In this document: positions 1,250 through 50,757 of the stretch, in pieces | How the letters are laid out: each line of letters starts with the position of its first letter | Numbering within the stretch: position 1 is the first letter of the stretch | Source of the DNA: Piromyces finnis finn | Lineage: Eukaryota > Fungi > Neocallimastigomycota | NCBI GenBank assembly: GCA_002104945.1 | Contig: MCFH01000021.1 | Coordinates: forward strand, 1-64,000 | DNA: 64,000 nt | Direction: 5' to 3' | The notes under the pieces: model-generated | What the model was told of the DNA's origin: nothing | The model's input: only the letters and a program-made list of their open reading frames with translations | The model's database searches: none | Position numbers and translations under genes: made by a program

Positions 1250-2326
1250 TGATGCGTTGACCGATATATTTTTGAATAATATAATATTTTTAATAAATAA
1301 TAAATTCTAATATTTATGATGAAACAATAAATTTAAAATAAAATAAAATATGTTTTATAATTAACAAATAAATCACTCAAAAACTCGAAAATAAACTCTT
1401 TTTATTATGTTTAAATTATCTCTTTATTATATTTATAATTTATTTATTGTCTATTTATTGTCCCCCCCTTTATAAAGAAGAATTTTATCTTCCTTTTATA
1501 CATTTTCATTTATTACATGTATTATTATTTTTAACTATTAAATGTTATTATTACTATTGTTATTATTTATTAAAATTAAAAGAATAAATTAAAATTATGT
1601 CTTAGTATTATAAAATATTATAGAATATTACTTATTTGATTTTCTTATTACTTCAAAATGTTTAAATTTAGAAAAATTATTATAAATTATCATTGACTAT
1701 CATTAAATGTATAATACCTTGAATAAAATAATTAAAATTTAAAATTAAAATAATATTAAAATAAAATTAAAATGAAATTAAAATATTAAAAGTATCAATT
1801 ATTATAAACACTCATTTTATACAGAAACATAAAAGAGTTCTGTATTTTATCTTTGAAATTGTTATTATTGTTCTATTTCCAGGCTTTAAATTAATCACTT
1901 TTAGTAATAATTACTCAGTTATTTATTTGTTAATTTATATATATAAGTTTGAAAGAATTTCTAAAGAACACTTGGATAAAACACTAGAATTAATAATTTA
2001 ATGTATATCATTTTATTTTTTTAGTTTATTTATTCATTTTTATTTACTTATTATTATTTTATTATTTTAATACATTTTTGGATTGAGTCGTTTTATTTTA
2101 TTTAATAATTTATTTTATTATTATCTCTATTAAGTCGTTTTTATTCATAATTTATTATTTAATAAAGAGAATATTATTTATTTAAAAGAAAGGGTTATAT
2201 TTCCATAAAATTATTATTTATTCATTTTTAAGGGTTATTATCTTTTATTTTTATTATAAGTCGCTATGGGTTAAGTCGTGTTTATTCGGCTAGTTTTTAT
2301 TACGTTTTTATTTGAGTAGCGTATCA
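1250..2326. mobile_element. Family K solo LTR (1077 bp) inserted at bases 8-11 of an N LTR
   Basis: TGATGCG...CGTATCA termini; 4-bp TSD AATC (1246-1249 and 2327-2330); preceded by the N-LTR start TGTAACG (1239-1245). Confidence 0.85.
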
Positions 2327-3059
2327 AATCTGTTACGGTTCGAGGAATTTACTTTTATTTATAAAATATTAATAAATTTATTAATACTCAAAAATAATAT
2401 TAAAATGAAATAAGAAAAATTGTTTTATTAATAAAATTGTTTTATTAAGATATTAATATAAAATTATAAAATAAAATAAAAATAAAAATAAAAATATCTG
2501 TATATTCTCTAATTCTTATAATATACACCTTTTTATACTTTTTGTAAAAAATTAAGTAGTGTTAATTAAAAGAATTAGTCTTTAATTATTTACATTAATT
2601 TTAGTATTTAAATTACTTTTAAATGAATAATAAAATTACATTACTATTATAATAAATATTTATACATATTATTAAATTGATTAACATACATTAAAAGTTT
2701 ACTTTAAATATATTTAACTAAAGAATTTTACTATTTTACAGAAATATTATTCATAATTTTAATTAATAAAAATTCATTAACTTGATAAATTAAACTAAAA
2801 GTTCAATAAACTATAATTTTCAATATATTATTATTACTAAATTAATTTTTAAGTTTAATAAAATAAAATTTAAGTTCAATAAAAATAATTATTAATAATT
2901 TTAAATATAATTTAAGTGTATACATTAATTTACAAATAAGAATATTGTAAAGTTTTCATATATTTAGGAACAATAATGGATTAGGTCATAATCATTAATT
3001 ATGACAAGAATAACATTATTTGTTGGTTCCTTAACAAGTGCCCCCACGAAGACTCTTGC

Positions 3060-6000
3060 TTACGCAAAAGCAGAGTTAAACTTTACAATGTTCTTAAGAT
3101 GAACATTTCGGTTCATCTGAATTCCAGTGGATATATCAGCTAAAGTAACCGTATTGAATTGTTTCTTGACAACTTTGAGTGGTCCAACGAAATAAGGCTC
3201 TAACTTCGTTCGATTAAAATTTCTAACTAATACTAGATCACCGATATGGATATTTTTGCCCTTAGTCATACTTTGTTTTTCTTCCCTTCTAGTAGCCCAG
3301 TATTTATTCGCATTTTTAATATTTTCACAAGCTTCCAACGTCCACCTGTAATGATTAATAAACTTCTCAAGTAAGATTTCATCCGAAGACTGATTAATAC
3401 CCTTAGTAGGTCTGGCGGCAATATCAAAGGGTTGCTGATCTTCTCTTCCATAAACCAATTCAAAGCTAGAATGGTTTGTGACAGTATTTTTAGTAGTTCT
3501 GAGCGCCCAAAGAGCAGAAGGCAAAACTTCATCCCAATCCTTGTTTTCTGTTCCAAGCAGTCTTAGAAGCTTTCCAATTTCTCTGTTTCTATTTTCAGTC
3601 AAACCATTACTTTCAGGATGATAAGTTGAGACAAACTTGACATAGACATCATATAAGTCCAGGAAAACTTTGGTCATATCTGAGGTAAATTGGACACCGT
3701 TATCGGTTGTAATGACTTGTGGTACTCCATGCCGAGAGAAAACATTGATTAAAAATTTTATGACATCCTTTGAAGTGATATTTTCGGTGGGTTCTGCTTC
3801 GACCCATTTTGTGAAATGATCCACTGCAACTATAATATATTGGTTATTGTTACGAGTTTTTACCAATGGACCAATGATATCTAAACCCAGATGAGTGAAA
3901 GGAGCTTCAACCTCAGTTGGAAGATTTTCCGTAGGTTCTGGATATGGTTGAGGGCGATTAAGTTGGCATTTTTCACATTTGGCTACAACTCTTCGAATAT
4001 CATTAACCATGTCGTTCCAATAATAGCTTTTTCTCAGACGTTGATAAGTTTTATAATATCCTTCATGTCCAATGTTATGAGCTTCCAAAATCAATTTCAG
4101 CTTTTCATTGGTTTCCGTGATCAGTTTTCGATAATTCCTTCCATCAATAAAGTAATCCACCCCATCTATTTTGGTGAACTTTTCTTCAACAAATTCTTTA
4201 ATTACCTTAGATAGCATGGTTTCTTCTATACCTTTATTAATTTTAGTAGCTAACACTTCCTTATCTTTGTCATTTCTCATTCGAGACAGTGCATCTGCTA
4301 CAACATTCTTTTTACCTTGTTCATAACGAATATCAACTCCTAGCATACTAGCTGTTAAACACCATCTTGTTTGTCTTGCATTGTTTGGCTCCTTATTTTT
4401 AAATAATCCAATTAATGGTTTATGATCAGTATAGACGATAGTCTTGAATGGACTTCCCATTATATAAGGCTTTAATTTAGTAATGCAGTAAAATAAGGCA
4501 GTCCCTTCCAAGTCAGTAATTCCATAATTTTTTTCTGCTTTCGTCAGACTTCGGCTAATATAATGAATTGGATGTTCAATATCGGTACCTTCCTTTTGTA
4601 ATAATACTCCTCCGATTCCTTCATACGATGCATCTGTTCGGATTATAAATTCTTTCTCAAAATCAGGGAATTTCAGAATAGGCGCATTAATTAACTTTTC
4701 TTTCAATATAATAAAACTCTCTTGTTGTTCATTACACCATTTGAAAGGAACACCTTTTCTAAGCAGCTTACACAAGGGAGCAGTAAGTTTAGCATAATTA
4801 GGAATAAAATCTCTATAATATCCAATTGAACCTAGGAATGATCTTAATTCATGGATATTCGAAGGAGGTTTCCAATTTTTTATAGCTTGGATTTTGTTAT
4901 CTAATGGTTTAAGACCTTCTGTAGTTAAACGATGGCCTAACACGTCAACTTCAGTTTGCATAAAATGACATTTTTCAATATTGATTTTTAGTTTGTTTTC
5001 CCGGAAAATTGCTAAAACTTGATTTATATGTTCAATATGTTCTTCAATACTCTTTGAATAGATCAGAATATCATCAATGAAGTTATAAACACACTTTCCA
5101 ATTAACGGAAACAGAATCCGATTCATCTCCCTCTGAAATGTAGCGGGTGCTCCAGTGAGACCAAAAGGCATAACCTTGAATTGGTAATTTCCAAACTTAG
5201 TTGTAAAACTTGTCAATTCAACGCTTTCTTCATCCATAAGGATTTGATGATAGCCGGAATATAAGTCCATAGTAGTGAATATAGTTGCACCATGTAAACT
5301 ATCAAATATCTCATCTATAAAAGGAATTGAATAGGCATCCTTTTCAGACAAATCATTAACTCTTCGATAGTCCACGCACATTCTCCATTTCCCATTATGC
5401 TTCGGGACCAAAACCACCGGAGAAGACCATTCCGAGTACGATGGCTCAATTAGCTTTTTATTAATCAATTTAGACAATTCTTCCTTAAGTATATCAGATT
5501 TGAACTTGGCTAACCTATATGATCTTTGTTTAATTGGCTTTGCTCCTGGCTTTAAATTAATCTTATGGGGAGTTAAATTCGAAGGTGTTAGTTCTTCAGA
5601 AGAAGTAGCAATAATTTCAATATTCTCTTCCAATATCCGAACAATTTGTTCTCGATACTTTTCATTAAGAGTCTCAGTAAAATTTTTATTGTGAATATAT
5701 TCTGAAGGTGGTAAACCTTCAATATTTTTCAAATCACTTTTAAAATCTTCATCACCGACTCTACGTATCATACACATAATCTTTTCTTCATCATCATATT
5801 TGTTATTAATTGGAGCAATATCTTCAATAAATCCATTTGAATTAAATCTGCAAAGACTATAGCGAAGTGGGTGGATAAATAAGTTGTTATCCATTTGGGT
5901 TTTCAAATTAATTAACATATCATAAAAGGGGTCTTCTTTATCCACCACTCTAAAATCAGCAGTGATTGTAAGATCATTTATCTGGACCGGTACTCTAATA

Positions 6001-7115
6001 ATTATACCTTCCGAATAGTCATCATTTTTAGTAGCTAAACGTATTCTTCCACAACTCAATCCAATAGATTCATATTGATGGGGAAGTTTATCTAAATATT
6101 TTTTTGTTATAATACTTAAGTTGCTACAGGAATCAACTAATAATTTACCTGGTACCCCATCAACCGTTGCATCTACCATAGCGATATCTTCTTCTGATAC
6201 TTCTTTACTTTTGCTTACATACGAATGATCTACATTATTTACTAATACCGAAGTAGCATTAAAATTCTCCAGAGCTCCCACAATTTTTGTGTTGTTCTTT
6301 TCCAGTTTAAGACCTTGTGACACTTGCGTTCGTAACTTTGGAGCCGAGTTAAGTAATTGACCAAAAGTAATATTGCATTTTGTTTCGTTAAGATCTTTAA
6401 CTACATTATATTCTTCCGTATCTGCTATCATTTGAATATTTCTAGCAGTTTTCTTAACCTTCGATTCTGCAGGTTTTTCTTTCTTTTGCTTTTTCATTAA
6501 TTTATTTAGAGTTGAATTAGAAGTAGATTTGGTTGATTCACTTGTGTTATCTTTCTCTACCACCTTAGCACCTTTCTTATCTGTAATTGCAGATAACATT
6601 TCTTCTTCATCATAGTCGATAATAATAGGATCTTCCTTAGAACTTGCCAATTCATTCTTTTCTTCTTCCTTTTGTTCACTACTACTAGCACGCTCTTTAT
6701 CCCGAAGTTTTCTTTCTTTTAGTTTTTGTTCTCTGATATTCGGTTGAGCAATAATAGAAGGATGCAGTTGCTTAGGAGAAACATCTATTGGTATATTTTC
6801 TAATTCTTGTGCTTTACGTTTCCTAAGAGCAGGTGTAAGAATAGGTCTAGGATCATTTTTCAAGTTTTTGTGAAGTCGTTTTTCTTTATTATCATCTTGT
6901 TCTTTGCTTATTTTATCCAACTTCCTTTTATTAGCACATACAAAGAACTGTTCATTAATATCAGTATCTTCAAAGTCACTTTCGATTTCTTCATCATATT
7001 CTTCTTTCGACCAATCACTCTGGCTTGTTGTTTCTTCACTTGGCATTGACTGATACTGAGCTGAAGCTATTTTATTGACGATGGGAGTGCTTCTTCTCCC
7101 ACTTAATGATTTAAA
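3060..7115 (-). CDS. pol: Element A Pol (protease, RT, RNase H, integrase with GPY/F), reached by a -1 frameshift from gag
   Basis: LLVDSCSN protease, YNFIDD RT, IRTDAS RNase H, HNIGH..C..C zinc finger, LDIIGP/TDNG/E catalytic triad; frame is open from the slippery site to the listed ATG at 7046. Confidence 0.95.
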   Translation of the reverse strand, partial: FKSLSGRRSTPIVNKIASAQYQSMPSEETTSQSDWSKEEYDEEIESDFEDTDINEQFFVCANKRKLDKISKEQDDNKEKRLHKNLKNDPRPILTPALRKRKAQELENIPIDVSPKQLHPSIIAQPNIREQKLKERKLRDKERASSSEQKEEEKNELASSKEDPIIIDYDEEEMLSAITDKKGAKVVEKDNTSESTKSTSNSTLNKLMKKQKKEKPAESKVKKTARNIQMIADTEEYNVVKDLNETKCNITFGQLLNSAPKLRTQVSQGLKLEKNNTKIVGALENFNATSVLVNNVDHSYVSKSKEVSEEDIAMVDATVDGVPGKLLVDSCSNLSIITKKYLDKLPHQYESIGLSCGRIRLATKNDDYSEGIIIRVPVQINDLTITADFRVVDKEDPFYDMLINLKTQMDNNLFIHPLRYSLCRFNSNGFIEDIAPINNKYDDEEKIMCMIRRVGDEDFKSDLKNIEGLPPSEYIHNKNFTETLNEKYREQIVRILEENIEIIATSSEELTPSNLTPHKINLKPGAKPIKQRSYRLAKFKSDILKEELSKLINKKLIEPSYSEWSSPVVLVPKHNGKWRMCVDYRRVNDLSEKDAYSIPFIDEIFDSLHGATIFTTMDLYSGYHQILMDEESVELTSFTTKFGNYQFKVMPFGLTGAPATFQREMNRILFPLIGKCVYNFIDDILIYSKSIEEHIEHINQVLAIFRENKLKINIEKCHFMQTEVDVLGHRLTTEGLKPLDNKIQAIKNWKPPSNIHELRSFLGSIGYYRDFIPNYAKLTAPLCKLLRKGVPFKWCNEQQESFIILKEKLINAPILKFPDFEKEFIIRTDASYEGIGGVLLQKEGTDIEHPIHYISRSLTKAEKNYGITDLEGTALFYCITKLKPYIMGSPFKTIVYTDHKPLIGLFKNKEPNNARQTRWCLTASMLGVDIRYEQGKKNVVADALSRMRNDKDKEVLATKINKGIEETMLSKVIKEFVEEKFTKIDGVDYFIDGRNYRKLITETNEKLKLILEAHNIGHEGYYKTYQRLRKSYYWNDMVNDIRRVVAKCEKCQLNRPQPYPEPTENLPTEVEAPFTHLGLDIIGPLVKTRNNNQYIIVAVDHFTKWVEAEPTENITSKDVIKFLINVFSRHGVPQVITTDNGVQFTSDMTKVFLDLYDVYVKFVSTYHPESNGLTENRNREIGKLLRLLGTENKDWDEVLPSALWALRTTKNTVTNHSSFELVYGREDQQPFDIAARPTKGINQSSDEILLEKFINHYRWTLEACENIKNANKYWATRREEKQSMTKGKNIHIGDLVLVRNFNRTKLEPYFVGPLKVVKKQFNTVTLADISTGIQMNRNVHLKNIVKFNSAFA
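7063..7115 (-). promoter_or_regulatory. -1 ribosomal frameshift signal of A (TTTAAAT + pseudoknot)
   Basis: Slippery heptamer at 7109-7115, 6-nt spacer, stem GTGGGAG/CTCCCAT, loop GAAGC pairs with downstream GCTTC. Confidence 0.8.
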
Positions 7116-7984
7116 TGATTATCATAATAACGCTTCTTGTTTCCTTCAATAATGGCTTGAAGTTTTGGGCAATTTTGTTGATAATGACCAGGTTCACTAC
7201 AGAAGAAACAAGCTTTAATAGTTAAATTCTTCATTTTCTTGACTAGGTTATTCATTTCATCATCTTTATTAGGCTTTTTGGCTTCAGTAAAAGAAACTTT
7301 TCTCTTGTATGGTTGAAAATTATTATAACTTTTGGTTATTGCAGTAGTCGTTGGTAGATTACCATCATTATCTATTCTAGTAGATAACCTATCTACCTTC
7401 TCAGCTATCTTAAAGGCCTTTTCTAGAGTGATATCATCTTTTAAAGATACTTTTCTCCATGCTTCTTTATTATTTTGTAAAGAATCTGCATAATCTAACA
7501 CACTAATCTGCTTCTTCTTTTTCTTATCCAACTTTAAATATAAAGATCTATATCTTCTATTGAAATCTTTAACTGATTCATTTCTTCTTATACGTAGTCT
7601 TCTTAGTTCCCGTAATAACATACTTTGATCTTCTTTTAACCCATAAAATGTTTCAAGGGCATTGATAATTTTCCCAAGTGAGGGATAATCTTCTTCATTA
7701 GATTCATTTTTCTGATTCTCTTCTTCATTTTCACTTTCATATTCATCTTCACTATCACTGTCTTTATCTTCCAACTCTTGGATTACCTTTCTTGGTTCAC
7801 CCTTAGAAGTAAGCACACATGCCATGTAAATTTTCTTGGCACTAGTGATATCTTGAAGTTCAATCCATAAACTTATTTCAGAAGCCCAGGATCTTATGTC
7901 CAAATTATCTTTGGAAAGTTTTTCTATATCCTTGAGTTCCTTCTTCAACTCCTTGAAATCTATCCTTGTAGTAGAATTGCTCAT
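7103..7984 (-). CDS. gag: Element A Gag with CCHC knuckle
   Basis: CFFCSEPGHYQQNC; the ORF-track start at 8044 is a TTG, and the first ATG (MSNSTT) is at 7984. Confidence 0.9.
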   Translation of the reverse strand: MSNSTTRIDFKELKKELKDIEKLSKDNLDIRSWASEISLWIELQDITSAKKIYMACVLTSKGEPRKVIQELEDKDSDSEDEYESENEEENQKNESNEEDYPSLGKIINALETFYGLKEDQSMLLRELRRLRIRRNESVKDFNRRYRSLYLKLDKKKKKQISVLDYADSLQNNKEAWRKVSLKDDITLEKAFKIAEKVDRLSTRIDNDGNLPTTTAITKSYNNFQPYKRKVSFTEAKKPNKDDEMNNLVKKMKNLTIKACFFCSEPGHYQQNCPKLQAIIEGNKKRYYDNHLNH

Positions 7985-9496
7985 TTTCTTGTATTTTCCT
8001 TGACCGAATTTATTGCAGTACAAGATGACACAGTATAGACTCAAAAATACCTTTGATAGTCTAAAAAAAAATTATAAGTTCGAAATTCCTTTATCGACCA
8101 CTTATTAGTTGTAACCAAGCTCGAAATTCCTTTATCGACCACTTGACAGAATGAGATACAAATAATCTAGCACAGCACGTACTACCAATTATTTATTTAA
8201 ATTTTTAGTATCACTCCTTACTATCTTAGTTCAGTCAGAAAAGATGAAATTATTACTTTTGTTTTCTGTTTTTCTTATAGTTAATTATTATTTGTTTTCA
8301 ATTTACTAGCAAGAATTTTAATTTAATATTGTTATTACTGATTCAAGTTACCGACCAAATTATATATAATAGACTATTAACTAAGAGTCTTTCGTCCAAT
8401 GGTAAATGTTGCCGTCACCTTATTCACACGATCTAAGTTCCGTCACGTGCTTCAGGATCTTTCTACCACCCCTAGTATACCTCTGTTGATTAGTTAATAA
8501 TGCTTGTCTATGCTGATATAACTTGTTTAACTTAAAACAGTAAGAAAAGAATATTTCAATTAGCAATATTAAATTACTCGAAGAGAATCAACAAAAAGAA
8601 TAGATATATATATCTATATTTTTTTTTTTTTTTTTTTTTAATTAATTATTTTTTAAAAACTTATTTCTTTTTATAAAAATATAAGCCAACCTATATAATG
8701 TTAAACCATCAAGTATTATAGGTTGTGTAATTCTAAGTGAAAATCCCTCGTAGCTCTTTGATGATAGGCCACAAATATACCCGATGGTTAATATTAAATA
8801 TAATTTAATAAAAGGAAGTAACGTAATTAATTTCTTTATTATCACTAACTTAATTAGCGGAAAGAAAATAATTGATTATCTTCCCCAATTATCAGGTATA
8901 ATTGAACACCAAAGTATTACGTACAGCAGTTTAACTTGCCACGCTAAGGGTCACTTTCGAATTATTTATTTATATTTTAAAAAGAATAATTTTTAAAAAT
9001 CGTTCAATTAAAAAAAAATATTTTTTTTTTTTTTTTTAAAAAAAATTATAAATACTAAAATAATATTTAATTTATTAAAAATTTGAATTACAATAATAAG
9101 TATAGTAGAACAGCATTTCACAGCAATTTTCCAATACTTATTTAGGGTGCTTAAGTAGTTCACAATTGCCCAGCTTACCGTATTACCAGTGTCATGTAGC
9201 AATTATGCGAGGCACTTCTATTTCTCTAGCAAAATAGAAAGGTTCAGCGCTTTCCAGTATCCTACTGTGAAAGATAAACTAGACCTAAAAACTTAACCAC
9301 TAATTCCTAAATAAGTACTGCTTCTAAAGCGTACTAATTCAGTTCTACTAAAATATTATACCTTAAAGCTTCAACAGTAATATAAATATTACCTATAACT
9401 TTGAAGGGTAATAAATTTTTAAGAAATTTATATAATATTTTAGTAATATTTTAATATTACTTTATCCTATGTATTAATAATTTTTATTAATATTAT

Positions 9497-9513
9497 CCCC
9501 GATATCTCCACCA
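9497..9513 (-). promoter_or_regulatory. PBS of A, tRNA-Ala type
   Basis: TGGTGGAGATATCGGGG, complementary to a tRNA-Ala-like 3' end (...ATCTCCACCA), 7 nt from the LTR. Confidence 0.75.
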
Positions 9514-10230
9514 ATTTTTATGTTACGGTTCGAGGAATTTACTTTTATTTATAAAATATTAATAAATTTATTAATACTCAAAAATAATATTAAAATGAAA
9601 TAAGAAAAATTGTTTTATTAATAAAATTGTTTTATTAAGATATTAATATAAAATTATAAAATAAAATAAAAATAAAAATAAAAATATCTGTATATTCTCT
9701 AATTCTTATAATATACACCTTTTTATACTTTTTGTAAAAAATTAAGTAGTGTTAATTAAAAGAATTAGTCTTTAATTATTTACATTAATTTTAGTATTTA
9801 AATTACTTTTAAATGAATAATAAAATTACATTACTATTATAATAAATATTTATACATATTATTAAATTGATTAACATACATTAAAAGTTTACTTTAAATA
9901 TATTTAACTAAAGAATTTTACTATTTTACAGAAATATTATTCATAATTTTAATTAATAAAAATTCATTAACTTGATAAATTAAACTAAAAGTTCAATAAA
10001 CTATAATTTTCAATATATTATTATTACTAAATTAATTTTTAAGTTTAATAAAATAAAATTTAAGTTCAATAAAAATAATTATTAATAATTTTAAATATAA
10101 TTTAAGTGTATACATTAATTTACAAATAAGAATATTGTAAAGTTTTCATATATTTAGGAACAATAATGGATTAGGTCATAATCATTAATTATGACAAGAA
10201 TAACATTATTTGTTGGTTCCTTAACAAATC

Positions 10231-12387
10231 TATTAGAAAATTAATATTGTCTTAATGGTTAGTATTTAAGACATTAATCTGGATCACTCGGGTTCGACTC
10301 ACACCTTGATCCAAAATTTATTTTAAATTATTTATTTAACAATTTAATTTATGACTCATAGAAACTTATAGAACTTATTCGAAAAAGAAAAAGTTCGAAT
10401 ATTCGAAAAATTAAATATTTTATGTATTTTTATCACGAGATTCATTTTATGTAATTTTTAATTAATTTAAAGAATAATTTAGAAAGAAAATTTAATTTTT
10501 AATTTAGTGTAATGCTGACACAGAAAGAATAGATTAGGATATCTATTCTATTACAATAACACAAAATTTAAAATAAAATAAAAAATTGTTTTATTAAAAA
10601 TATCTTTTATTATAATAGAAATTTTATTAATAACAATTACATCGATAAAATGATGAAAAATATCTTCTATTTATATTTTTCCTAAATACATTTATATTAT
10701 ATTATAACTATTTATTTCTTATATATTATTATTTAAAATCTACACTAAAATCTTAATTATTAATAAATATTTAAACTATAACTATTTTTAGTAAAATACA
10801 ATTGGCAATTCAAATTAAGTACTATTCAATTTGAATATGTGCCCATGTATTATTGATATATTAATCATTTATTATTTATTTATTTCTATGAAAAAACAAT
10901 ACTAAAACTAGGGATTTAAATTGAGAATATTAATTTACTTGTTAAACATTAAAAATAAATTAATAATTTATTTTGTTTTAAACTTTAATTATTAATAAAT
11001 AAATTATGTCTCATTTTCTTTTTCTGAATATAATTTGTGTAACTTAAACAATAATACTTGTGGCTTAAGTTACATTAAAGATATCAAACAGAGGCGTTTG
11101 ATATCTTTACAGTCAACCAATATTTAATATCCCAATTATTTATACTATTCAACTTGACTATTCCTAATTATTTTATTCTTATATTAAATAAATAATTTAA
11201 CAACCTTATTATTATACTATACTAACCTTTTTATTATTTACTACTACTAAACTAACAACTAGTTATTAACCAAACTAATATATTTTTATTATTACTGTAA
11301 CGAATCTGATGCGTTGACCGATATATTTTTGAATAATATAATATTTTTAATAAATAATAAATTCTAATATTTATGATGAAACAATAAATTTAAAATAAAA
11401 TAAAATATGTTTTATAATTAACAAATAAATCACTCAAAAACTCGAAAATAAACTCTTTTTATTATGTTTAAATTATCTCTTTATTATATTTATAATTTAT
11501 TTATTGTCTATTTATTGTCCCCCCCTTTATAAAGAAGAATTTTATCTTCCTTTTATACATTTTCATTTATTACATGTATTATTATTTTTAACTATTAAAT
11601 GTTATTATTACTATTGTTATTATTTATTAAAATTAAAAGAATAAATTAAAATTATGTCTTAGTATTATAAAATATTATAGAATATTACTTATTTGATTTT
11701 CTTATTACTTCAAAATGTTTAAATTTAGAAAAATTATTATAAATTATCATTGACTATCATTAAATGTATAATACCTTGAATAAAATAATTAAAATTTAAA
11801 ATTAAAATAATATTAAAATAAAATTAAAATGAAATTAAAATATTAAAAGTATCAATTATTATAAACACTCATTTTATACAGAAACATAAAAGAGTTCTGT
11901 ATTTTATCTTTGAAATTGTTATTATTGTTCTATTTCCAGGCTTTAAATTAATCACTTTTAGTAATAATTACTCAGTTATTTATTTGTTAATTTATATATA
12001 TAAGTTTGAAAGAATTTCTAAAGAACACTTGGATAAAACACTAGAATTAATAATTTAATGTATATCATTTTATTTTTTTAGTTTATTTATTCATTTTTAT
12101 TTACTTATTATTATTTTATTATTTTAATACATTTTTGGATTGAGTCGTTTTATTTTATTTAATAATTTATTTTATTATTATCTCTATTAAGTCGTTTTTA
12201 TTCATAATTTATTATTTAATAAAGAGAATATTATTTATTTAAAAGAAAGGGTTATATTTCCATAAAATTATTATTTATTCATTTTTAAGGGTTATTATCT
12301 TTTATTTTTATTATAAGTCGCTATGGGTTAAGTCGTGTTTATTCGGCTAGTTTTTATTACGTTTTTATTTGAGTAGCGTATCAAATC
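10231..12387. repeat. 2157-bp tandem unit, copy 2 (pseudo-tRNA 10241-10313, M LTR 10508-11111, K solo LTR 11307-12383)
   Basis: Looks identical to 174-2330. Confidence 0.9.
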
Positions 12388-12397
12388 TATTAGAAAA

Positions 12398-12470
12398 TTA
12401 ATATTGTCTTAATGGTTAGTATTTAAGACATTAATCTGGATCACTCGGGTTCGACTCACACCTTGATCCA
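12398..12470 (+). promoter_or_regulatory. Pseudo-tRNA A/B-box element in the N 5' LTR
   Basis: Same sequence as 184-256; the AATC TSD lies at -14..-11 from the inferred +1. Confidence 0.7.
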
Positions 12471-13304
12471 AAATTTATTTTAAATTATTTATTTAACAAT
12501 TTAATTTATGACTCATAGAAACTTATAGAACTTATTCGAAAAAGAAAAAGTTCGAATATTCGAAAAATTAAATATTTTATGTATTTTTATCACGAGATTC
12601 ATTTTATGTAATTTTTAATTAATTTAAAGAATAATTTAGAAAGAAAATTTAATTTTTAATTTAGTGTAATGCTGACACAGAAAGAATAGATTAGGATATC
12701 TATTCTATTACAATAACACAAAATTTAAAATAAAATAAAAAATTGTTTTATTAAAAATATCTTTTATTATAATAGAAATTTTATTAATAACAATTACATC
12801 GATAAAATGATGAAAAATATCTTCTATTTATATTTTTCCTAAATACATTTATATTATATTATAACTATTTATTTCTTATATATTATTATTTAAAATCTAC
12901 ACTAAAATCTTAATTATTAATAAATATTTAAACTATAACTATTTTTAGTAAAATACAATTGGCAATTCAAATTAAGTACTATTCAATTTGAATATGTGCC
13001 CATGTATTATTGATATATTAATCATTTATTATTTATTTATTTCTATGAAAAAACAATACTAAAACTAGGGATTTAAATTGAGAATATTAATTTACTTGTT
13101 AAACATTAAAAATAAATTAATAATTTATTTTGTTTTAAACTTTAATTATTAATAAATAAATTATGTCTCATTTTCTTTTTCTGAATATAATTTGTGTAAC
13201 TTAAACAATAATACTTGTGGCTTAAGTTACATTAAAGATATCAAACAGAGGCGTTTGATATCTTTACAATCTCTCTCTCTAAGTCGAGCTCCTGCGAGAT
13301 TAAT

Positions 13305-16300
13305 TTATAAGGAATCTTTTCTCGAAGGAATTTCAATTACAAATGGTTGGTATCTGTGCTTGATTAGATTACCAACTTTATTCTTTCTAATTTTCATGGA
13401 GGAGTCGTTCGACTTATATTTTGACTTTTTAGAGTTTCTTTCAAACTCTTGTATTAATTGTTTATCTGGAATCTGATCTTCAGAAATCCAAGTGGATTTG
13501 TCAAATCCTTTCCATGATAACTTATAAAATGTTTCACCATTAACAGATTTCATCTTTTCAATTTTCTCTGGAATTTTTTCAATTAAATCTGTGTTAAGGT
13601 GAATGTTCCTCTTCCTACGATTAGACCTGTCGTTAAACTTGTTTTCAAAGTATGGTTCTAACAATGAAACATGAAAGACTGGATGACATCTCATTGTCTT
13701 TGGAAGTTTCAATTTGAAAGCGAGAGAACTAACTTTTTCAATTATCTCAAATGGGCCAAGCATTTGAGGTGCTAATTTTCTCTTTAGGTTAGTTCCAGGA
13801 GAATCTTTCAATAACCATACTTTCTTTCCCACTTCGAACTCCGGGGGAATCATTCTCTTCATATCGGCATATTTCTTATATGTTTCTTTTGCTTTTTCTA
13901 AGTTTTCTTTTAATAATTTAAAGTTTTCATTCATATCAATTACTCTTTGTTCAGCTCTACTAGGTCTATCATTAGCCGGGATTTCCAAGCTGAACTTTGG
14001 ATGAAAACCATAATTAGCAAAGAATGGGGATTGATTTATAGATTGTTGTAAAGTATTATTATATGCAAATTCAGCAAATGGGATAAGATCAACCCAGTTA
14101 TTCTGCTTTTTATTTATAAAACAACGGAAATATTGTTCTAATATGCCGTTCACCCTCTCCGTTTGACCATCTGTCTGCGGATGGTTGGCAGTTGATAATG
14201 AATGATTGATATTAAGAAGGTCACAAAGTCTTGACCAAAAGTCAGAAGTAAATTGCGAGCCTCTATCAGAAATGATGGAATCAGGAAGACCATGCAAACG
14301 GAAGACATTAGCAATAAAAGCATCAGCAGCAATCGAAGCAGTAGGAAGACAACGTAAAGGAATGGCGTGAGCAAATTTAGTAAATCTATCGACAACAACC
14401 ATGAGAGTTGTCATATCTCTGGACTTAGGAAGATCAACAATAAAATCAATAGAAATATCAGACCAGGGCCTACTGGGAGTGTCCAAAGGGGATAACAATC
14501 CATAAGGCTTATGTCTGGGGACTTTGGATTTGCAACAAGTCACGCAAGATTTGATAAAAGATTTAACGTCTGAATGAAACCTTGGCCACCAAAAGTTTCT
14601 GGAAATCAGTTCAGTGGTTTTCTTAATACCGAAATGACCAGCAGCAACAGAATCATGATGAAGTTCCAAAACTCTTGTCCTAAGAGATTTAGGAACATAA
14701 ATAAGATTATTATATAACAAAAATCCTTCGTTATCAATAATAACTTTATCAATATTTTTAATAGGTGCATTACATGCAGAACCATTCATTTTAAATTGGA
14801 CAATAGAATTATACAAATCGTCATTTTTAAGTTCTAATAAAATAGAATCGATTAACGGTTTGTTATCGCTATGATGAAACGAAATAGTAAGACAAGAAAC
14901 ATCAGAATTAATATTATTCTCTAAATGGTCACTTCTACGAGACAGGATATCAGGCTTACCGGATTTCTTTCCAGCTCTATAAATGAGTTTAAAATCAAAT
15001 CTGGATAAGAACAAATTCCATCTAATTTGTCTCTGAGATAACATTTCAGGTTTTCTAGGAAATGTTAAATTCTTGTGATCAGTATAAATTATGAACGGAT
15101 GGCGTGCACCTTCTAAATAATGACGCCATTCTTCAAGAGCAACTACAATAGCTAAAAGTTCCTTGTCATATATAGGATAGTTTCTTTGACAACTCGTCAA
15201 ACTTTTAGAAAGAAATGCAATAGGATGTAATTTGCCATCAAATTCTTGAGAGAGAATAGCACCGACAGCATAATTACTAGCATCAGTTTCTACAATAAAT
15301 TGTTTATTACTATCCGCATGTTTTAGAATAGGAGCTGACGTGAACAGAGATTTTAATAAAATAAAAGCGTCCTGATCTTCTTTCACCCAGTTAAAAGCAA
15401 CATTCTTTCTAGTGAGTTTGTGAAGAGGGTTTGCAATTTTAGCAAAGTCTTTAATAAAAATTCTGTAATAGTTGCATAAACCAATAAAAGACTGAACCTC
15501 TTTAACATTCTTGGGAACCGGCCAATCGAGAATTGCTTTAATTTTATTCTCATCCATTTGCAATCCATCCTTTGAAATGACATAACCAAGAAAAGTGGTT
15601 TTCTCAACATCAAACTCACATTTTTCTAATTTAACATAAAGATTATTTTCAAGTAGTTTCTTAAGTACCTTTTTAACATGCTCATGATGTTCTTCGATAT
15701 TATTAGAATAAATAAGAATATCATCAATATATGAGATAACAAAATCGTCTAAATAGTCACTAAGGACATCGTTAATGAAGTGTTGAAAAGTTGCAGGTGC
15801 ATTCTTTAATCCAAAAGGCATAACCAGATATTCAAAATGACCATACCTAGTACGAAAAGCCGTTTTGTATTCGTCACCTTCTTTAATACGAACAAGATTA
15901 TAAGCGGATTTAAGGTCTAATTTGGTAAAAATCTTAGCATTTTTCACCCTATCCAAAAGGTCACTTATTAAAGGTAAAGGATATGAATTACGAATTGTAA
16001 TATTATTCAACCTTCTATAATCAATACAAAGTCTTAAGGAACCGTCCTTCTTTTTAACAAACAAAATTGGGGCACCAGCAGGAGACGATGATTTCCTAAT
16101 AAAACCTTTATTTAAATTTTCATCTATATACTTTTTAAGTTCCTCTCTTTCAACTTCAGTTAATGGATACAAGGGTCCATAAAATAAAGTTGAATCATCC
16201 TTAAGTTTGATTTCACAATCATAAGGTCTATGAGGAGGTAACACTTCACAATTTTTTTCGTTAAACACTTCACTAAATTCTAAATATTGGGTTGGTACGG

Positions 16301-17852
16301 CGACCAATTTATCTTTATTAATATTCTTTTCATTATTATTATTACTACATGATTCATTATCATTATTACATGTTTCATTAATTTTCGTTACAATACATTT
16401 AACTTTTTTATTAAAACTAATATATTCATCATCGCTGTCATCTTCATCATTAATGGTTCTAACAAGGCGGCCTTTAACATATTCTTTTTCTTCATGGTTT
16501 GGGACGGAGGAATCTACTTTCGGTTTTTTGGTTAAGCTTCGGTCGAGAACATCATGATCTAATTGATCATTCTTGGACTTCTTTCTTGGTTTTCTTTTTC
16601 TTTTACCTTTGTTACAGTGTCTGGCACAATAACCAGAACTAAAAGCGATTTTCTTAGAGTCATAGAAAGCATTTGGATTATGCTTCTTTATCCACGGCAA
16701 ACCAAGAATAACATCAACACCGGGGACTTGTAATCCATAAAGTTGAATTACTTCGAAGTGATTTTTGCAACGGAGCATGCACTTCTCAGTCCTTTCCCAA
16801 ACACTAACAACTCCATCACTAACACCTGAAACACGGAATGGTTCCACTTTTTCCAAATTAATACCAAGTTCTTCAGCAAGACTTGGATTAATGAAATTTA
16901 ATTCAGAACCGGAATCAATTAAAACCTTAATCTTAACTTCCGAAACTTCATTGGTACTCAAGTAAAAGTCCACAAGGTTTAAATCACTTTTCACTCCCTT
17001 GACTCCAACTTTGTAAATTTTTGGATTAACAATTTTTGGAGTCCTTTCTTTCACAATTCTTAACACTTTTCTGGGCTTTACTCTATTAGGACAATTAAAT
17101 TTTAAATGTCCTGGTTGTTTACAAAGAAAACATAACCCCTTTTTCTTTTCTTCTTCAAAGTTGTCTATGTTTTCATTGTAATTTTTACTTGATCCTTGGA
17201 TATTCACATACCTTTTGCGTTTATTTTCTCTACTAATTCTAAATACATCCACATCCATAGGATCGTTAGCCCTTCTACCATTAAAATAAAATTCACTTAG
17301 AGAATTCCTTTTCATCATATCTTCAACTAAAATAGTTGAAGAAATCAATTGTTCAATTGAAGTTGGGTTTGATTCAATGAAAGCCAACTTCTCCCTAAGT
17401 GGTGGTAATAAACCTTTCAGAAACATGTAGATTTTTGCGCTGTCATTAAAGCTTGAATTTTGGCTAATACGTTGAAACTCGGTAATGTAATCTAATACCT
17501 GACCAAGTTTCCTTTGGCGAAGATTATCTAATTTACCGTTAGCTACAACGGTATCGTATCTATAACTGCCAAAATTAGCCTTCAACCTATCTACAAATTC
17601 ATCATAATGGTTTAAAACCCCACTATTATTCTTCATCAACACTGAAGCCCATTCCAAAGGTTTACCAGAGAAGTATGATATAACGAAGTCGACCTTGACT
17701 CGATCTGTATTATACAGTGTCGGTCGAGTACGAAATACCAACTCAACTCTGGTTAAAAATCCATCCAATTCTCTTTGTTTACCAGAAAATATCGGTGGAG
17801 CATTAATAATGTTCCCCGAATTCCCAGAAACACCCACAGTCCTATCACCCAT
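13305..17852 (-). CDS. Element M single Gag-Pol polyprotein with a degenerate C-terminal chromodomain
   Basis: CFLCKQPGHLKFNC, VLIDSGS, ISYIDD, VETDAS, HHDSVAAGH..C..C, FYKLSWKGFDKSTW; the track start at 17894 is a TTG, first ATG at 17852. Confidence 0.95.
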   Translation of the reverse strand: MGDRTVGVSGNSGNIINAPPIFSGKQRELDGFLTRVELVFRTRPTLYNTDRVKVDFVISYFSGKPLEWASVLMKNNSGVLNHYDEFVDRLKANFGSYRYDTVVANGKLDNLRQRKLGQVLDYITEFQRISQNSSFNDSAKIYMFLKGLLPPLREKLAFIESNPTSIEQLISSTILVEDMMKRNSLSEFYFNGRRANDPMDVDVFRISRENKRKRYVNIQGSSKNYNENIDNFEEEKKKGLCFLCKQPGHLKFNCPNRVKPRKVLRIVKERTPKIVNPKIYKVGVKGVKSDLNLVDFYLSTNEVSEVKIKVLIDSGSELNFINPSLAEELGINLEKVEPFRVSGVSDGVVSVWERTEKCMLRCKNHFEVIQLYGLQVPGVDVILGLPWIKKHNPNAFYDSKKIAFSSGYCARHCNKGKRKRKPRKKSKNDQLDHDVLDRSLTKKPKVDSSVPNHEEKEYVKGRLVRTINDEDDSDDEYISFNKKVKCIVTKINETCNNDNESCSNNNNEKNINKDKLVAVPTQYLEFSEVFNEKNCEVLPPHRPYDCEIKLKDDSTLFYGPLYPLTEVEREELKKYIDENLNKGFIRKSSSPAGAPILFVKKKDGSLRLCIDYRRLNNITIRNSYPLPLISDLLDRVKNAKIFTKLDLKSAYNLVRIKEGDEYKTAFRTRYGHFEYLVMPFGLKNAPATFQHFINDVLSDYLDDFVISYIDDILIYSNNIEEHHEHVKKVLKKLLENNLYVKLEKCEFDVEKTTFLGYVISKDGLQMDENKIKAILDWPVPKNVKEVQSFIGLCNYYRIFIKDFAKIANPLHKLTRKNVAFNWVKEDQDAFILLKSLFTSAPILKHADSNKQFIVETDASNYAVGAILSQEFDGKLHPIAFLSKSLTSCQRNYPIYDKELLAIVVALEEWRHYLEGARHPFIIYTDHKNLTFPRKPEMLSQRQIRWNLFLSRFDFKLIYRAGKKSGKPDILSRRSDHLENNINSDVSCLTISFHHSDNKPLIDSILLELKNDDLYNSIVQFKMNGSACNAPIKNIDKVIIDNEGFLLYNNLIYVPKSLRTRVLELHHDSVAAGHFGIKKTTELISRNFWWPRFHSDVKSFIKSCVTCCKSKVPRHKPYGLLSPLDTPSRPWSDISIDFIVDLPKSRDMTTLMVVVDRFTKFAHAIPLRCLPTASIAADAFIANVFRLHGLPDSIISDRGSQFTSDFWSRLCDLLNINHSLSTANHPQTDGQTERVNGILEQYFRCFINKKQNNWVDLIPFAEFAYNNTLQQSINQSPFFANYGFHPKFSLEIPANDRPSRAEQRVIDMNENFKLLKENLEKAKETYKKYADMKRMIPPEFEVGKKVWLLKDSPGTNLKRKLAPQMLGPFEIIEKVSSLAFKLKLPKTMRCHPVFHVSLLEPYFENKFNDRSNRRKRNIHLNTDLIEKIPEKIEKMKSVNGETFYKLSWKGFDKSTWISEDQIPDKQLIQEFERNSKKSKYKSNDSSMKIRKNKVGNLIKHRYQPFVIEIPSRKDSL

Positions 17853-18087
17853 CTCTAAATTTAAATTTTCAAACTCACTAATTAAGTCCTCCAACGTTAA
17901 ATATAAAACAAAATATAAAAAATGTTTTCTTACTACTGTTTCAAGTAAGTAATTTTTTTTTTTTTTTTTAAAAGAAAAAACTATTTCTACAAAAACGATG
18001 TTAGTTAATACAAAAGTTATTCAAACTCGATCTGTTATACAGTGTCGAACAAGTTTTGTATTATATAATAATAATATTAATCAGAGT

Positions 18088-18125
<38 letters not shown>

Positions 18126-18135
18126 CTTCTGCTAG

Positions 18136-18383
18136 GGTAGCAACAAAGTTTCTTCAATACTCTCTTGAACCAAGGTAGCAACAAAGTTTCTTCAATACTC
18201 TCTTGAACCAAGGTAGCAACAAAGTTTCTTCAATACTCTCTTGAACTAAGGTAGCAACAAAGTTTCTTCAATAATCTCTTGAACCAAGGTAGCAACAAAG
18301 TTTCTTCAATAATCTCTTGAACCAAGGTAGCAACAAAATTTCTTCAATAATCTCTTGAACCAAGGTAGCAACAAAGTTTCTTC
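18136..18383. repeat. 6.5 copies of a 38-bp tandem repeat in the M leader
   Basis: Unit GGTAGCAACAAAGTTTCTTCAATACTCTCTTGAACCAA, with no spacers. Confidence 0.95.
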
Positions 18384-18421
18384 GGGCGGTAGATATCCTA
18401 ACGTACTCTTGAAGTAGTTAG

Positions 18422-18432
18422 GTAATTGTTAT
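18422..18432 (-). promoter_or_regulatory. Self-priming PBS of M
   Basis: ATAACAATTAC directly after the 5' LTR is complementary to LTR bases 18555-18565, which lie about 35 nt downstream of TATAAATA (18593-18600, minus strand). Confidence 0.8.
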
Positions 18433-19274
18433 TGTAATGCTGACACAGAAAGAATAGATTAGGATATCTATTCTATTACAATAACACAAAATTTAAAATA
18501 AAATAAAAAATTGTTTTATTAAAAATATCTTTTATTATAATAGAAATTTTATTAATAACAATTACATCGATAAAATGATGAAAAATATCTTCTATTTATA
18601 TTTTTCCTAAATACATTTATATTATATTATAACTATTTATTTCTTATATATTATTATTTAAAATCTACACTAAAATCTTAATTATTAATAAATATTTAAA
18701 CTATAACTATTTTTAGTAAAATACAATTGGCAATTCAAATTAAGTACTATTCAATTTGAATATGTGCCCATGTATTATTGATATATTAATCATTTATTAT
18801 TTATTTATTTCTATGAAAAAACAATACTAAAACTAGGGATTTAAATTGAGAATATTAATTTACTTGTTAAACATTAAAAATAAATTAATAATTTATTTTG
18901 TTTTAAACTTTAATTATTAATAAATAAATTATGTCTCATTTTCTTTTTCTGAATATAATTTGTGTAACTTAAACAATAATACTTGTGGCTTAAGTTACAT
19001 TAAAGATATCAAACAGAGGCGTTTGATATCTTTACATTTAGCCACATCAGATTTAGAAAAAGTATAAATAGAAGTGATGTGAATCAAAAATTAAATAGTT
19101 GTGTTTTTATTAACTTTTAAATTTAAATCTTTATTTTTAAAAAAATTTAATAATAATAAAAAATTATTTTAAATAAATAAATTTATTGACTTATAGGGAA
19201 TACAAAATTTATTTTTCTATATAAATATTATTAATTCCTACATTAATAAATTCTTTATATAGAAACTCGTTACA

Positions 19275-19284
19275 ATAAAAACAC
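19275..19284 (+). promoter_or_regulatory. Self-priming PBS of N
   Basis: ATAAAAACAC is complementary to GTGTTTTTAT at 19101-19110, 38 nt downstream of the start of TATAAATA (19063). Confidence 0.75.
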
Positions 19285-19534
19285 CAGTTGTAACATATTC
19301 CCTTTACCTTAATTAATTTGTTTATTTTTTAAAAAAAAAAAAAATTTTTTTTAACTTATTGAAACCTTCCTGAATTTTCTTGGACTCTTTTGAACCCTCT
19401 CTTGGACTCTCTTTTGAACTCTTTTGGACTCTCTTGGATTCTCTTGGATTCTTTTGGATTCTTTTGGATTCTTTTGGATTTATTATACTGATTAAATTAA
19501 ATTAAAATTAGATATTATAAATAAAATAAAGAAA

Positions 19535-23770: not shown

Positions 23771-24060
23771 TTTCAACGGAAACTTTATTTTAATTTATCT
23801 TAATTTTATTTTTAATTTTATTCTTAAAAAAAAAAAAAAAAAAAAATTATTTTCTTAAATTTTAAATTTACTTTAAGCATGTATTTAATATCAAATATAT
23901 AATATAAAAAATTATTTTTATTGTAATTCAATTAGTATAGTTTAAGTTTATAGTAGTTATATAGCCTAAAAAATTAATTTAATAAAACATAAAATGAACC
24001 CAAAGATTCGTCTGGTATCCGAATCCTGGAGGAGGACCATGTAACGAATCTATTAGAAAA

Positions 24061-24133
24061 TTAATATTGTCTTAATGGTTAGTATTTAAGACATTAATCT
24101 GGATCACTCGGGTTCGACTCACACCTTGATCCA
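24061..24133 (+). promoter_or_regulatory. Pseudo-tRNA A/B-box element in the intact N 3' LTR (empty target site)
   Basis: TGTAACG-AATC-TATTAG... is uninterrupted here, with a single AATC at 24047-24050. Confidence 0.7.
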
Positions 24134-24559
24134 AAATTTATTTTAAATTATTTATTTAACAATTTAATTTATGACTCATAGAAACTTATAGAACTTATTC
24201 GAAAAAGAATAAGTTCGAATATTCGAAAAATTAAATATTTTATGTATTTTTATCACGAGATTCATTTTATGTAATTTTTAATTAATTTAAAGAATAATTT
24301 AGAAAGAAAATTTAATTTTTAATTTAGCCACATCAGATTTAGAAAAAGTATAAATAGAAGTGATGTGAATCAAAAATTAAATAGTTGTGTTTTTATTAAC
24401 TTTTAAATTTAAATCTTTATTTTTAAAAAATTTAATAATAATAAAAAATTATTTTAAATAAATAAATTTATTGACTTATAGGGAATACAAAATTTATTTT
24501 TCTATATAAATATTATTAATTCCTACATTAATAAATTCTTTATATAGAAACTCGTTACA

Positions 24560-26394: not shown

Positions 26395-26398
26395 TTGT

Positions 26399-29933: not shown

Positions 29934-29964
<31 letters not shown>

Positions 29965-39822: not shown

Positions 39823-39827
39823 AACAC

Positions 39828-40587: not shown

Positions 40588-40591
40588 AACA

Positions 40592-48077: not shown

Positions 48078-48108
<31 letters not shown>

Positions 48109-49341: not shown

Positions 49342-49372
<31 letters not shown>

Positions 49373-50723: not shown

Positions 50724-50757
<34 letters not shown>

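Follow-up and report, generated by a model that had tools for sequence, protein, structure and literature searches.

The outermost part of the LTR of a chromovirus, N, carries an A box and a B box at tRNA spacing, and other LTR retrotransposons are inserted upstream of these boxes at a position matching the one that elements of the same kinds use upstream of a genuine tRNA gene. We estimate a probability of roughly 55% that this outer U3 is a mimic of a tRNA promoter, bound by factors and used as a target by Ty3-like elements. The window, that is, the whole stretch of DNA that was analysed, comprises 64,000 nucleotides of Piromyces finnis and contains N, its nested insertions, and one tRNA gene.

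As it stands, N occupies 11296..24559 on the plus strand, with its 5' LTR in pieces (11296-11306, 12384-12663, and 19037-19274) around the nested elements K and B. The internal part (19275-24039) holds a single open gag-pol-chromodomain ORF of 1411 aa at 19535-23770, and the element measures about 5.8 kb without its nested insertions. The Pfam domains detected were Ty3_capsid, RVT_1, RT_RNaseH, Integrase_H2C2, rve, SH3_Tf2-1, and Chromo (residues 1361-1410). With gag, RT, RNase H, integrase, and a C-terminal chromodomain in this order, N is a chromovirus; its chromodomain matches HP1-type chromodomains, and its pol matches Ty3. The 3' LTR (24040..24559, plus strand, 520 bp) is intact, and its insertion site is unoccupied. 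It begins with TGTAACGAATC at 24040, has the termini TGTAACG...CGTTACA, is preceded by a PPT-like run, and matches the 5' LTR pieces at 98.8-99.3% identity. Element B (12664..19036, minus strand) is a Ty3/gypsy element with a 1529-aa ORF, 605-bp LTRs, and the 5-bp duplication TTTAG, nested in the 5' LTR of N between the box module and the TATA box.

In the 3' LTR, the pseudo-tRNA module spans 24061..24133 on the plus strand, includes the inferred position +1, and consists of hairpin 1 with the A box and hairpin 2 with the B box. The A-box-like 11-mer lies at 24068-24078 (copy at 10248-10258) and the B-box-like 10-mer at 24111-24120 (copy at 10291-10300), their starts being 43 nt apart, a tRNA-like spacing. 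The sequence-only reading had placed the boxes in U3 at about base 20; they do lie in U3, and the module starts at LTR base 29. The copy of the 5' LTR that carries element A has the module at 10241..10313 (plus strand), which is the interval proposed earlier, 10227-10313, minus AATC; identical copies were found at 184-256 and 12398-12470. The first T4 run after the module of the 3' LTR is at 24141-24144, and this putative terminator carries little weight, as T4 runs are common at 24% GC. The module has the same orientation as the Pol II promoter of the LTR. The TATA box (24348-24357) and the inferred start (near 24387) are both downstream, about 230 bp and 320 bp away, respectively, and the earlier statement that insertions in the 5' U3 lie upstream of both is correct.

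The module folds at -18 kcal/mol (z = -3.0) and scores 72 bits with the covariance model R1. For the pattern search, the boxes first noted were generalised with the textbook consensus into degenerate A-box/B-box patterns. Only 0.01 loose A-box...B-box patterns are expected per 64 kb on both strands (300 Markov simulations), and within the window the pattern was confined to N-type LTRs and the real tRNA-Ser, which shares the A-box start TGTC with the N module. The proposal of two boxes at tRNA spacing without a cloverleaf was confirmed. ARAGORN detected no tRNA at the module, the tRNA-Ser being its only prediction, and the Rfam tRNA model did not match the N LTR alone, even at E<=10. A genuine tRNA gene was thus rejected, given the negative ARAGORN and Rfam results (gathering, E<=10), the two hairpins, and the lack of an acceptor stem. 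A role as reverse-transcription primer was also rejected, as the PBS is complementary to the start of R. A tRNA-derived SINE inserted in the LTR was rejected too, due to the lack of flanking repeats or a tail and to the constant position of the module in ten lineages; any capture must therefore have been ancient.

Two insertion events were recognised at the N module within the window. The K solo LTR (1250..2326, plus strand, termini TGATGCG...GTATCA) is inserted at N LTR bases 8-11 and is flanked by AATC at 1246-1249 and 2327-2330. Element A (2331..10226, minus strand) is a full-length Ty3/gypsy element without a chromodomain, with 707-bp LTRs that are 100% identical and minus-strand ORFs at 7103-8044 and 3060-7046. 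Among solved structures, its pol is closest to the Ty3 Gag-Pol (7q5b). Element A is flanked by AATC at 2327-2330 and 10227-10230, the latter, on the plus strand, being the downstream copy of its 4-bp target duplication, and its 5' end faces the N module. As had been proposed, K and then A entered the same AATC, which lies at -14..-11 from the inferred +1 and is uninterrupted in the 3' LTR (24040-24559). The two families were first taken to be unrelated, but K-type and A-type elements are related partners. At N, the end of the duplication is 18 nt from the first A-box base, and A chose the AATC copy adjoining the module, not the copy adjoining the LTR tip. The LTR tip of A itself resembles that of N.

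K is seen three times (also at 11307-12383 and at 1-169, the latter cut at the window edge) because a unit of 2157 bp is present in tandem copies that are 100% identical. Each unit contains 184 bp of flank, N bases 1-11, the K solo LTR, N bases 8-288 (which open with the AATC copy downstream of K), and a single B LTR. K thus inserted once, and A inserted later, into a single unit. Part of this threefold identical repeat may be an error of the assembly.

The tRNA-Ser(TGA), at 50805..50886 on the plus strand, was detected by ARAGORN and by Rfam (58.5 bits); it is the only real tRNA gene in the window and served as the control target. Upstream of it, at least five elements of the same kinds as at N are stacked on the minus strand (38013..50789), all with 4-bp duplications and all in one AACAC at -16..-12, the position given in the sequence-only reading and borne out by the junction sequences. 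The stack comprises an A2-type solo LTR with a nested M LTR (38013-39822), a K2 solo (39828-40587), an A3 solo (40592-41449), a full-length A2 (41454-48820), and S, a non-autonomous element (48826-50789); its members were recognised from junction sequences, LTR pairs, and PBS-side and PPT-side motifs. Here, 19-20 nt separate the first A-box base from the end of the duplication (S, A2, and A3 junctions), and the orientation equals that at the N module, the PBS side facing the target. The duplicated target bases vary (AATC, AACA, ACAC, and CGAA), so a simple preference for the sequence AATC, independent of the boxes, is excluded. A second module-bearing LTR, the N2 solo LTR (47079..47513, minus strand, 435 bp, duplication GAAGG), is nested in A2; its A box starts at 47486, and its upstream site is unoccupied. 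A third insertion stack was observed at a GTTGT site (26395-36930).

Similar junctions occur on two contigs of another assembly. There, one LTR end (...TATCA) joins the 5' LTR of the P0023 element at a point 20 nt ahead of that LTR's A box, and another (...TTACA) joins a further N-like LTR 19-20 nt ahead of the A box; the missing tip of the L020 LTR was inferred from a relative. For the pieces that adjoin the LTRs in L014 and L020, BLAST returned weak AT-rich matches only and assigned no family. Among the inspectable LTR copies, only 3 of 11 have a junction at the site. The distance from junction to A box is constant at 18-20 nt; counted from the LTR tip, the insertions lie at varying positions (bases 6-9, 8-11, and about 13-16).

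The module occupies a constant position in ten LTR lineages (N, N2, L002/3, L012, L014+, L014rc, L020, L023, L024, and L024rc). Their proteins share 47-75% identity, the relatives of N have ORFs of 1073-1439 aa, and the six lineages linked to a protein match are 47-56% identical to the first 500 residues of N. Outside the module, the LTRs are unalignable. The lineage alignment gave a mean column identity of 0.84 for the A box, 0.83 for the B box, and 0.58-0.62 for the spacers, and the invariant columns cluster in the boxes, unpaired loop bases included. In alignments A1 and A3, the A-box T-G and T-G-G and the B-box G-T-T-C are invariant or nearly so across the ten lineages. The two-hairpin fold is kept in all of them except the degenerate L012. 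Helix 2, which pairs the 5' half of the B box with an upstream GAACY, is 92% paired, and one of its pairs occurs as CG, UA, and UG; covariation in hairpin 1 is weak (ten sequences). A T run follows the B box by 8-20 nt in every lineage. By its sequence, the box pair is no chance motif but a module kept in ten chromovirus LTR lineages. Some related lineages do not have it (L013, and probably L025), and in the contigs of P0005, P0015, P0022, and P0027 the module was absent or the contig was uninformative. A metagenome scan with an 18-mer around the B box resulted in seven contigs, two of them relevant and both from GCA_016295205.1; IMG/VR scans with protein or DNA patterns gave no match.

The reading that we prefer is as follows. 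In this self-priming chromovirus clade of anaerobic gut fungi, the first ~100 bp of U3 would be a tRNA-derived mimic of the internal promoter of a tRNA gene, with the A box and the B box each held in a hairpin of its own and a T run after the second hairpin. TFIIIC most likely binds this mimic in chromatin and would thereby place TFIIIB just upstream, and Pol III may transcribe it into an RNA of ~80 nt with two hairpins. The chromodomain-less Ty3-like elements of this genome (A, A2, A3, and C, with their K and S partners) would find their targets via the TFIIIC/TFIIIB complex and would thus keep a set spacing on the upstream side of the A box, whether they insert at the mimic or at real tRNA genes. 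Insertions at the mimic and at the tRNA gene match in position, and we infer the targeting mechanism at the mimic from Ty3 and DGLT-A. The earlier proposal of a Pol III-type landing site in the LTR agrees with the matching A-box distance, the orientation, and the varied target bases; the role that it gave to TFIIIC/TFIIIB is putative, as are the functions of landing pad, decoy, and chromatin barrier among which it left the choice.

The cost to N would be small because an insertion at the mimic of the 5' LTR would not be copied into its progeny. The benefit would probably be a TFIIIC-type boundary or a nucleosome-free zone that shields the LTR promoter of a heterochromatin-homing element; alternatively, N may benefit from a small RNA. 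A broader claim, which we put forward tentatively and at less than even odds, is that the mimic has been selected clade-wide as a portable TFIIIC/TFIIIB boundary for the element's promoter, with the side effect that each LTR becomes a landing site and nested islands are seeded.

A DNA promoter requires neither the conserved hairpins nor the pairing of the 5' half of the B box with an upstream segment, and both point to an added or alternative role at the RNA level. In another reading, the module is mainly a structure of RNA or single-stranded DNA that derives from a tRNA and acts in cis, and its boxes persist for the hairpins and not for Pol III factors. As part of U3, it lies in the 3' untranslated end of the N genomic RNA, where it might be used to form the 3' end, to stabilise or package the RNA, or in a step of reverse transcription. 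The retention of both hairpins in every lineage but the degenerate L012, the compensatory CG/UA change in helix 2, and the failures both of the module as a cloverleaf and of R1, the covariance model built on the two-hairpin structure, to recognise the real tRNA all fit such a structure. However, it leaves unexplained the tRNA-equivalent landing distance, which was found at two insertions within the window and probably at two outside it. Moreover, the columns without variation are those box positions that are critical for a promoter, unpaired loop bases among them, and the covariation support for helix 1 is weak. We consider this reading unlikely as the main role; the two roles do not exclude each other. 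The module may also be an LTR-borne Pol III gene, whose two-hairpin RNA of ~80 nt is selected, as has been suggested for Cassandra and Helenus, with targeting as a by-product and without a boundary role. Conserved boxes and hairpins, the T run that every lineage has 8-20 nt past its B box, and the precedent of Cassandra, which is transcribed from a 5S promoter (PMC10886601), speak for such a gene. However, TRIMp3 elements are believed to use their Pol III promoter for a short RNA of their own, whereas the 5.8-kb N has its own TATA box and self-priming start ~320 bp further on, so a Pol III unit cannot make the N genome; T runs, moreover, are uninformative in this base composition. On balance, this reading is doubtful too.

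If the boxes were a decaying tRNA or SINE relic, K and A would have chosen AATC by sequence, bendability, or a preference for LTR tips. In the window there are only two independent events, the K and A integrases are probably related, the site is near the LTR tip, and the tip of A resembles that of N, all of which suits a coincidence. This explanation is nevertheless very improbable and already disfavoured: the module is kept across ~50% protein identity in LTRs that are otherwise unalignable, the target bases vary, A took the module-side and not the tip-side AATC, the A-box spacing is constant (18-20 nt) whereas the LTR-tip distance is variable, and the same families stack at a real tRNA gene.

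The sequence-only reading knew of no description of this arrangement, which holds in part. LTRs with Pol III promoters are known from Helenus, Cassandra, and Ajax, the TRIMp3 group of LTR retrotransposons, in which this promoter derives from tRNA or 5S sequences (Kojima 2024, PMC10886601); these are miniature non-autonomous elements only, without evidence of targeting. TRIMp3 elements measure 0.3-1.3 kb and are thought to be transcribed by Pol III, and the conserved A and B boxes of Helenus (TRGCY...YGG and GGTTC) are read as Pol III promoters, whereas autonomous partners must, as argued there, use Pol II promoters (PMC10886601). The N LTR resembles Helenus in having conserved A and B boxes in a tRNA-derived segment that usually encodes no functional tRNA in Helenus and encodes none in N; Helenus also occurs in fungi, and its function is likewise deduced from conservation. 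However, N is autonomous, with 5.8 kb, a 1411-aa ORF, and its own TATA box and start downstream; its host belongs to the Neocallimastigomycota; its module, a derivative with two hairpins, lies at the outer border of U3; and, judging from the insertions, other elements treat this module as a tRNA gene, a kind of targeting unreported for Helenus. From its sequence layout, it is unlikely that the N RNA is made from a Pol III promoter, as in TRIMp3.

Ty3 of S. cerevisiae and DGLT-A of Dictyostelium integrate some 12-15 bp ahead of the mature 5' end of tRNAs, Ty3 via TFIIIB (PMC5006619). The A, A2, A3, and C elements and their K/S partners have a Ty3/gypsy pol and, like DGLT-A and unlike Ty3, do not have a chromodomain, and the A/K-type kin enter the tRNA-Ser at -16..-12, repeatedly at one site. 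They differ in the 4-bp duplication and in the host, a fungus of a different phylum. Their pol is related to Ty3 in sequence; tethering of the integrase by TFIIIB is putative. We know of no description, for Ty3 or DGLT-A, of a target inside the LTR of another retrotransposon. Integration profiles of TRE5-A on the Dictyostelium rDNA element (PMC5391098) and of Tj1 in S. japonicus (PMC4600332) have been taken as a read-out of Pol III complexes. The logic here is the same, a Pol III-directed retrotransposon exposing cryptic sites of the Pol III machinery; as far as these two accounts go, however, theirs are experimental profiles at host loci, whereas ours are fossil insertions at a cryptic site carried by a mobile element.

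In yeast, tDNAs and B-box-only TFIIIC sites act as chromatin boundaries, and TFIIIC-bound B boxes halt the spread of heterochromatin. The gypsy insulator of Drosophila, which binds Su(Hw) and not TFIIIC, lies in the 5' untranslated region. It likewise provides a mobile element with its own boundary element, a possible function of the N module, which differs in lying in U3.

For the phylum Neocallimastigomycota, whose transposons have hardly been described, these data provide a first view of tRNA-directed integration. Such modules can also inflate or confuse the annotation of tRNA and Pol III genes in these very AT-rich genomes. If the mimic binds the Pol III machinery, then autonomous and not only miniature retrotransposons carry Pol III promoter modules, and N would offer both a natural case of one transposon family creating the integration targets of another and a means of studying how elements that seek out heterochromatin maintain active promoters. 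If the reading as a portable boundary is true, one family would multiply the safe harbours of another.

The window, with a G+C content of 24%, consists almost wholly of nested LTR retrotransposons, apart from its single real tRNA gene, tRNA-Ser(TGA) at 50805-50886, an RRM gene and a CotH kinase domain ORF on the reverse strand (57284-58840); the CotH family is notably expanded among anaerobic gut fungi. The chromovirus N carries an open gag-pol ORF of 1411 aa (19535-23770) with capsid, RT, RNase H, integrase, SH3 and a C-terminal chromodomain that matches HP1-type chromodomains. Its best solved relative was Ty3 Gag-Pol, and the best named relative of the polyprotein was from Orpinomyces; JGI, ENA and Logan assemblies supplied most of the others. 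These relatives place the window in an anaerobic gut fungus (Neocallimastigomycota), with which the CotH ORF is consistent. For interrupted elements, comparisons were made piece by piece. The 3' LTR of N (24040-24559) is intact; the 5' LTR comprises bases 1-11 (11296-11306), bases 8-288 (12384-12663) and a remaining piece (19037-19274), separated by a solo LTR of family K (11307-12383) and by the Ty3/gypsy element B (12664-19036; 5-bp duplication TTTAG). A tandem array of 38-bp period lies inside B near its LTR (18073-18420).

The upstream part of N belongs to a 2157-bp unit present in three tandem copies with 100% identity (1-2335, 10222-12392 and 12215-13268). Each unit contains a 184-bp flank, N bases 1-11, K, N bases 8-288, beginning with the downstream copy of AATC, and one B LTR. 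We infer, as the simplest cause, that a B LTR upstream of N recombined unequally with the one nested in N, while the triple repeat could also be an assembly artefact. In one unit, a full-length element A (2331-10226), whose 707-bp LTRs are 100% identical, lies between K and the remainder of the N LTR. The bases flanking N, 1234-1238 on the 5' side and 24560-24564 on the 3' side, do not form a matching target duplication. A truncated second copy of A (24560-26394) adjoins the 3' LTR, and 184 bp of unrelated sequence flank the 5' LTR. At this locus, N is probably a recombinant or lies in rearranged DNA.

Near the start of the 3' LTR, an A-box-like 11-mer (24068-24078) and a B-box-like 10-mer (24111-24120) start 43 nt apart, and no tRNA detector tried accepted this region, in agreement with the sequence-only reading of boxes at tRNA spacing without a cloverleaf. 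A loose box-pair pattern, expected by chance 0.01 times per 64 kb, matched only N-type LTRs and the real tRNA-Ser within the window. The junctions read N bases 1-7 plus AATC, K, AATC, A, and AATC plus N from base 12 onward, and the intact 3' LTR, with its single AATC, represents the empty site. Therefore, K and A were two successive insertions at the same four bases, as had been proposed. The K insertion predates the tandem duplication and the A insertion postdates it, with A taking the AATC copy adjoining the module (the segment holding both boxes), not the copy adjoining the LTR tip.

As a control, we examined the tRNA-Ser, upstream of which five elements with 4-bp duplications are stacked: an A2-type solo LTR (38013-39822), a K2 solo LTR (39828-40587), an A3 solo LTR (40592-41449), a full-length A2 (41454-48820) and the non-autonomous S (48826-50789). 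The junctions read only AACA, AACAC or ACAC, so all five entered the same five bases, -16..-12, where the sequence-only reading had placed them. The A box starts 19 nt from the end of the duplication for S, 20 nt for A2 and A3, and 18 nt at the N module. A, A2 and S all turn their PBS side toward the target, and orientation is equal at both targets. Because the duplicated bases differ between N and tRNA-Ser, AATC is not a sequence preference, the alternative that had been named as fatal to the proposal. The insertion position at the module matches real-tRNA targeting. Ty3 and DGLT-A insert about 12-15 bp ahead of the 5' end of the mature tRNA, a position that for Ty3 is the Pol III start site, reached via TFIIIB (PMC5006619); the stacked elements occupy an equal position. 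A full-length copia-type element (50995-56921; 1708-aa ORF, duplication AAAAC), with an 18-bp-period array in the copia ORF region (53440-53960), lies about 105 bp downstream of the tRNA-Ser, and B lies about 195 bp downstream of the N module. These positions, one case each, might point to another type of Pol III-linked targeting, on the downstream side, or be meaningless.

K and A had been regarded as unrelated families, a view that did not survive comparison. S has the same PBS as A2, a PPT-adjacent motif is common to S, A2 and the autonomous element C, the LTR tips of C (TGAT...ATCA) are of the K/S type, and the pols of A, A2 and C are similar Ty3/gypsy types that lack a chromodomain. K and A inserted in independent events, probably with targeting machinery of one kind. 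The same kinds of element form a second stack (24560-36985), joined by TTGT, TTG and GTTG, which contains the truncated A copy, S2 (26399-28519), C (28523-36924) and 57 bp from the start of another S2-type LTR; it looks like repeated insertion at one GTTGT site whose target gene is not visible any more. Two 1-kb copies of LTR M (36984-37957 and 38640-39772) are about 89% identical; one is nested in an A2-type solo LTR, and a 48-bp copy of the C LTR end comes after the other.

Further LTRs were obtained from contigs encoding N relatives and by one pattern scan. All have terminal bases near-identical to those of N, with the module 17-35 nt further in. The ten module lineages comprise N, N2 (a solo LTR in the window, 47079-47513), L002/L003 (P0029), L012 (P0011, with degenerate boxes), L014+ (P0023), L014rc, L020, L023 (P0026), L024 (P0031) and L024rc; in the six linked to a protein match, identity of that protein to N's first 500 residues is 47-56%. 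The module is absent from at least one related lineage, L013, and probably also from L025. G+C-rich islands occur in the long leaders of N relatives (L014 1680-1800, L025 about 230-500, L002 about 1020-1180), the L014 island including the palindromic B-box-like GGTTCGAACC.

Two junctions outside the window, both from assembly GCA_016295205.1, were found at the module. In L014, the first five bases are missing from the 5' LTR of the P0023 element, and the sequence next to it ends in ...TATCA, an LTR end of K/S type oriented as in the window; given a 4-bp duplication, the site is 20 nt from the A box. In L020, roughly the first twelve bases of an N-like LTR are missing, and an LTR end ...TTACA borders on it, 19-20 nt from the A box. 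Classification of the two abutting pieces assigned no family. The sites vary relative to the LTR tip (bases 6-9, 8-11 and about 13-16) and agree relative to the A box. Three of the 11 LTR copies with a visible upstream edge have a junction in this zone, representing four events; elsewhere, the only two other N-family LTR disruptions observed were those by B in N and by a copia-like element in L022.

In the ten-lineage alignment, invariant columns are concentrated in the boxes, where column identity averages 0.84 and 0.83, compared with 0.58-0.62 in the spacers. Nine of ten folds form two hairpins, one holding the A box and the other pairing the 5' half of the B box with an upstream GAACY; the L012 fold is weaker and nested. 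Fold z-scores were -2.9 to -3.6 in five lineages. Pairing in helix 2 reaches 92%, and one of its pairs occurs as CG, UA and UG; covariation support for helix 1 is weak. A covariance model of the 62-nt non-coding module, searched against 131 kb, matched only module copies and did not find the real tRNA-Ser. A present-day tRNA function is excluded; a tRNA origin is likely, as the 5' half aligns well with the D-arm region of tRNA-Ser.

The module could also have served N itself, as the source of its genome RNA or as its reverse-transcription primer. The first role is unlikely, and the second was rejected. N has its own promoter downstream of the module, with a TATA box at 24348-24357, and the start segment about 30 nt after it is complementary to the PBS just past the 5' LTR (PBS 19275-19284, first bases of R 24387-24396). 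This pairing covaries in L024 (about 5345-5360), which indicates that N-family elements self-prime from their own RNA start, like Tf1, instead of using a tRNA primer. Thus, the module would not make the N genome and is not its primer.

On the best reading, the module is a tRNA-gene mimic recruiting the Pol III machinery, for which we infer factor binding and transcription. A TFIIIC-type boundary at the outer edge of U3 would be an attractive role, since N has a canonical chromodomain, and the conservation of the hairpins speaks for an additional contribution from an RNA-level role or a small Pol III RNA. The arrangement had been thought undescribed, which does not hold for LTR Pol III promoters as such: Helenus, Cassandra and Ajax carry tRNA- or 5S-derived ones, and are miniature, non-autonomous and thought to be Pol III-transcribed (PMC10886601). 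Unlike these, N is an autonomous chromovirus and therefore not a Helenus. A search of the literature on transposons and tRNA targeting in Neocallimastigomycota found no paper. What stands as new is a clade of autonomous chromoviruses in Neocallimastigomycota whose module lies upstream of the Pol II promoter, together with fossil insertions as evidence that Ty3-like elements target it.
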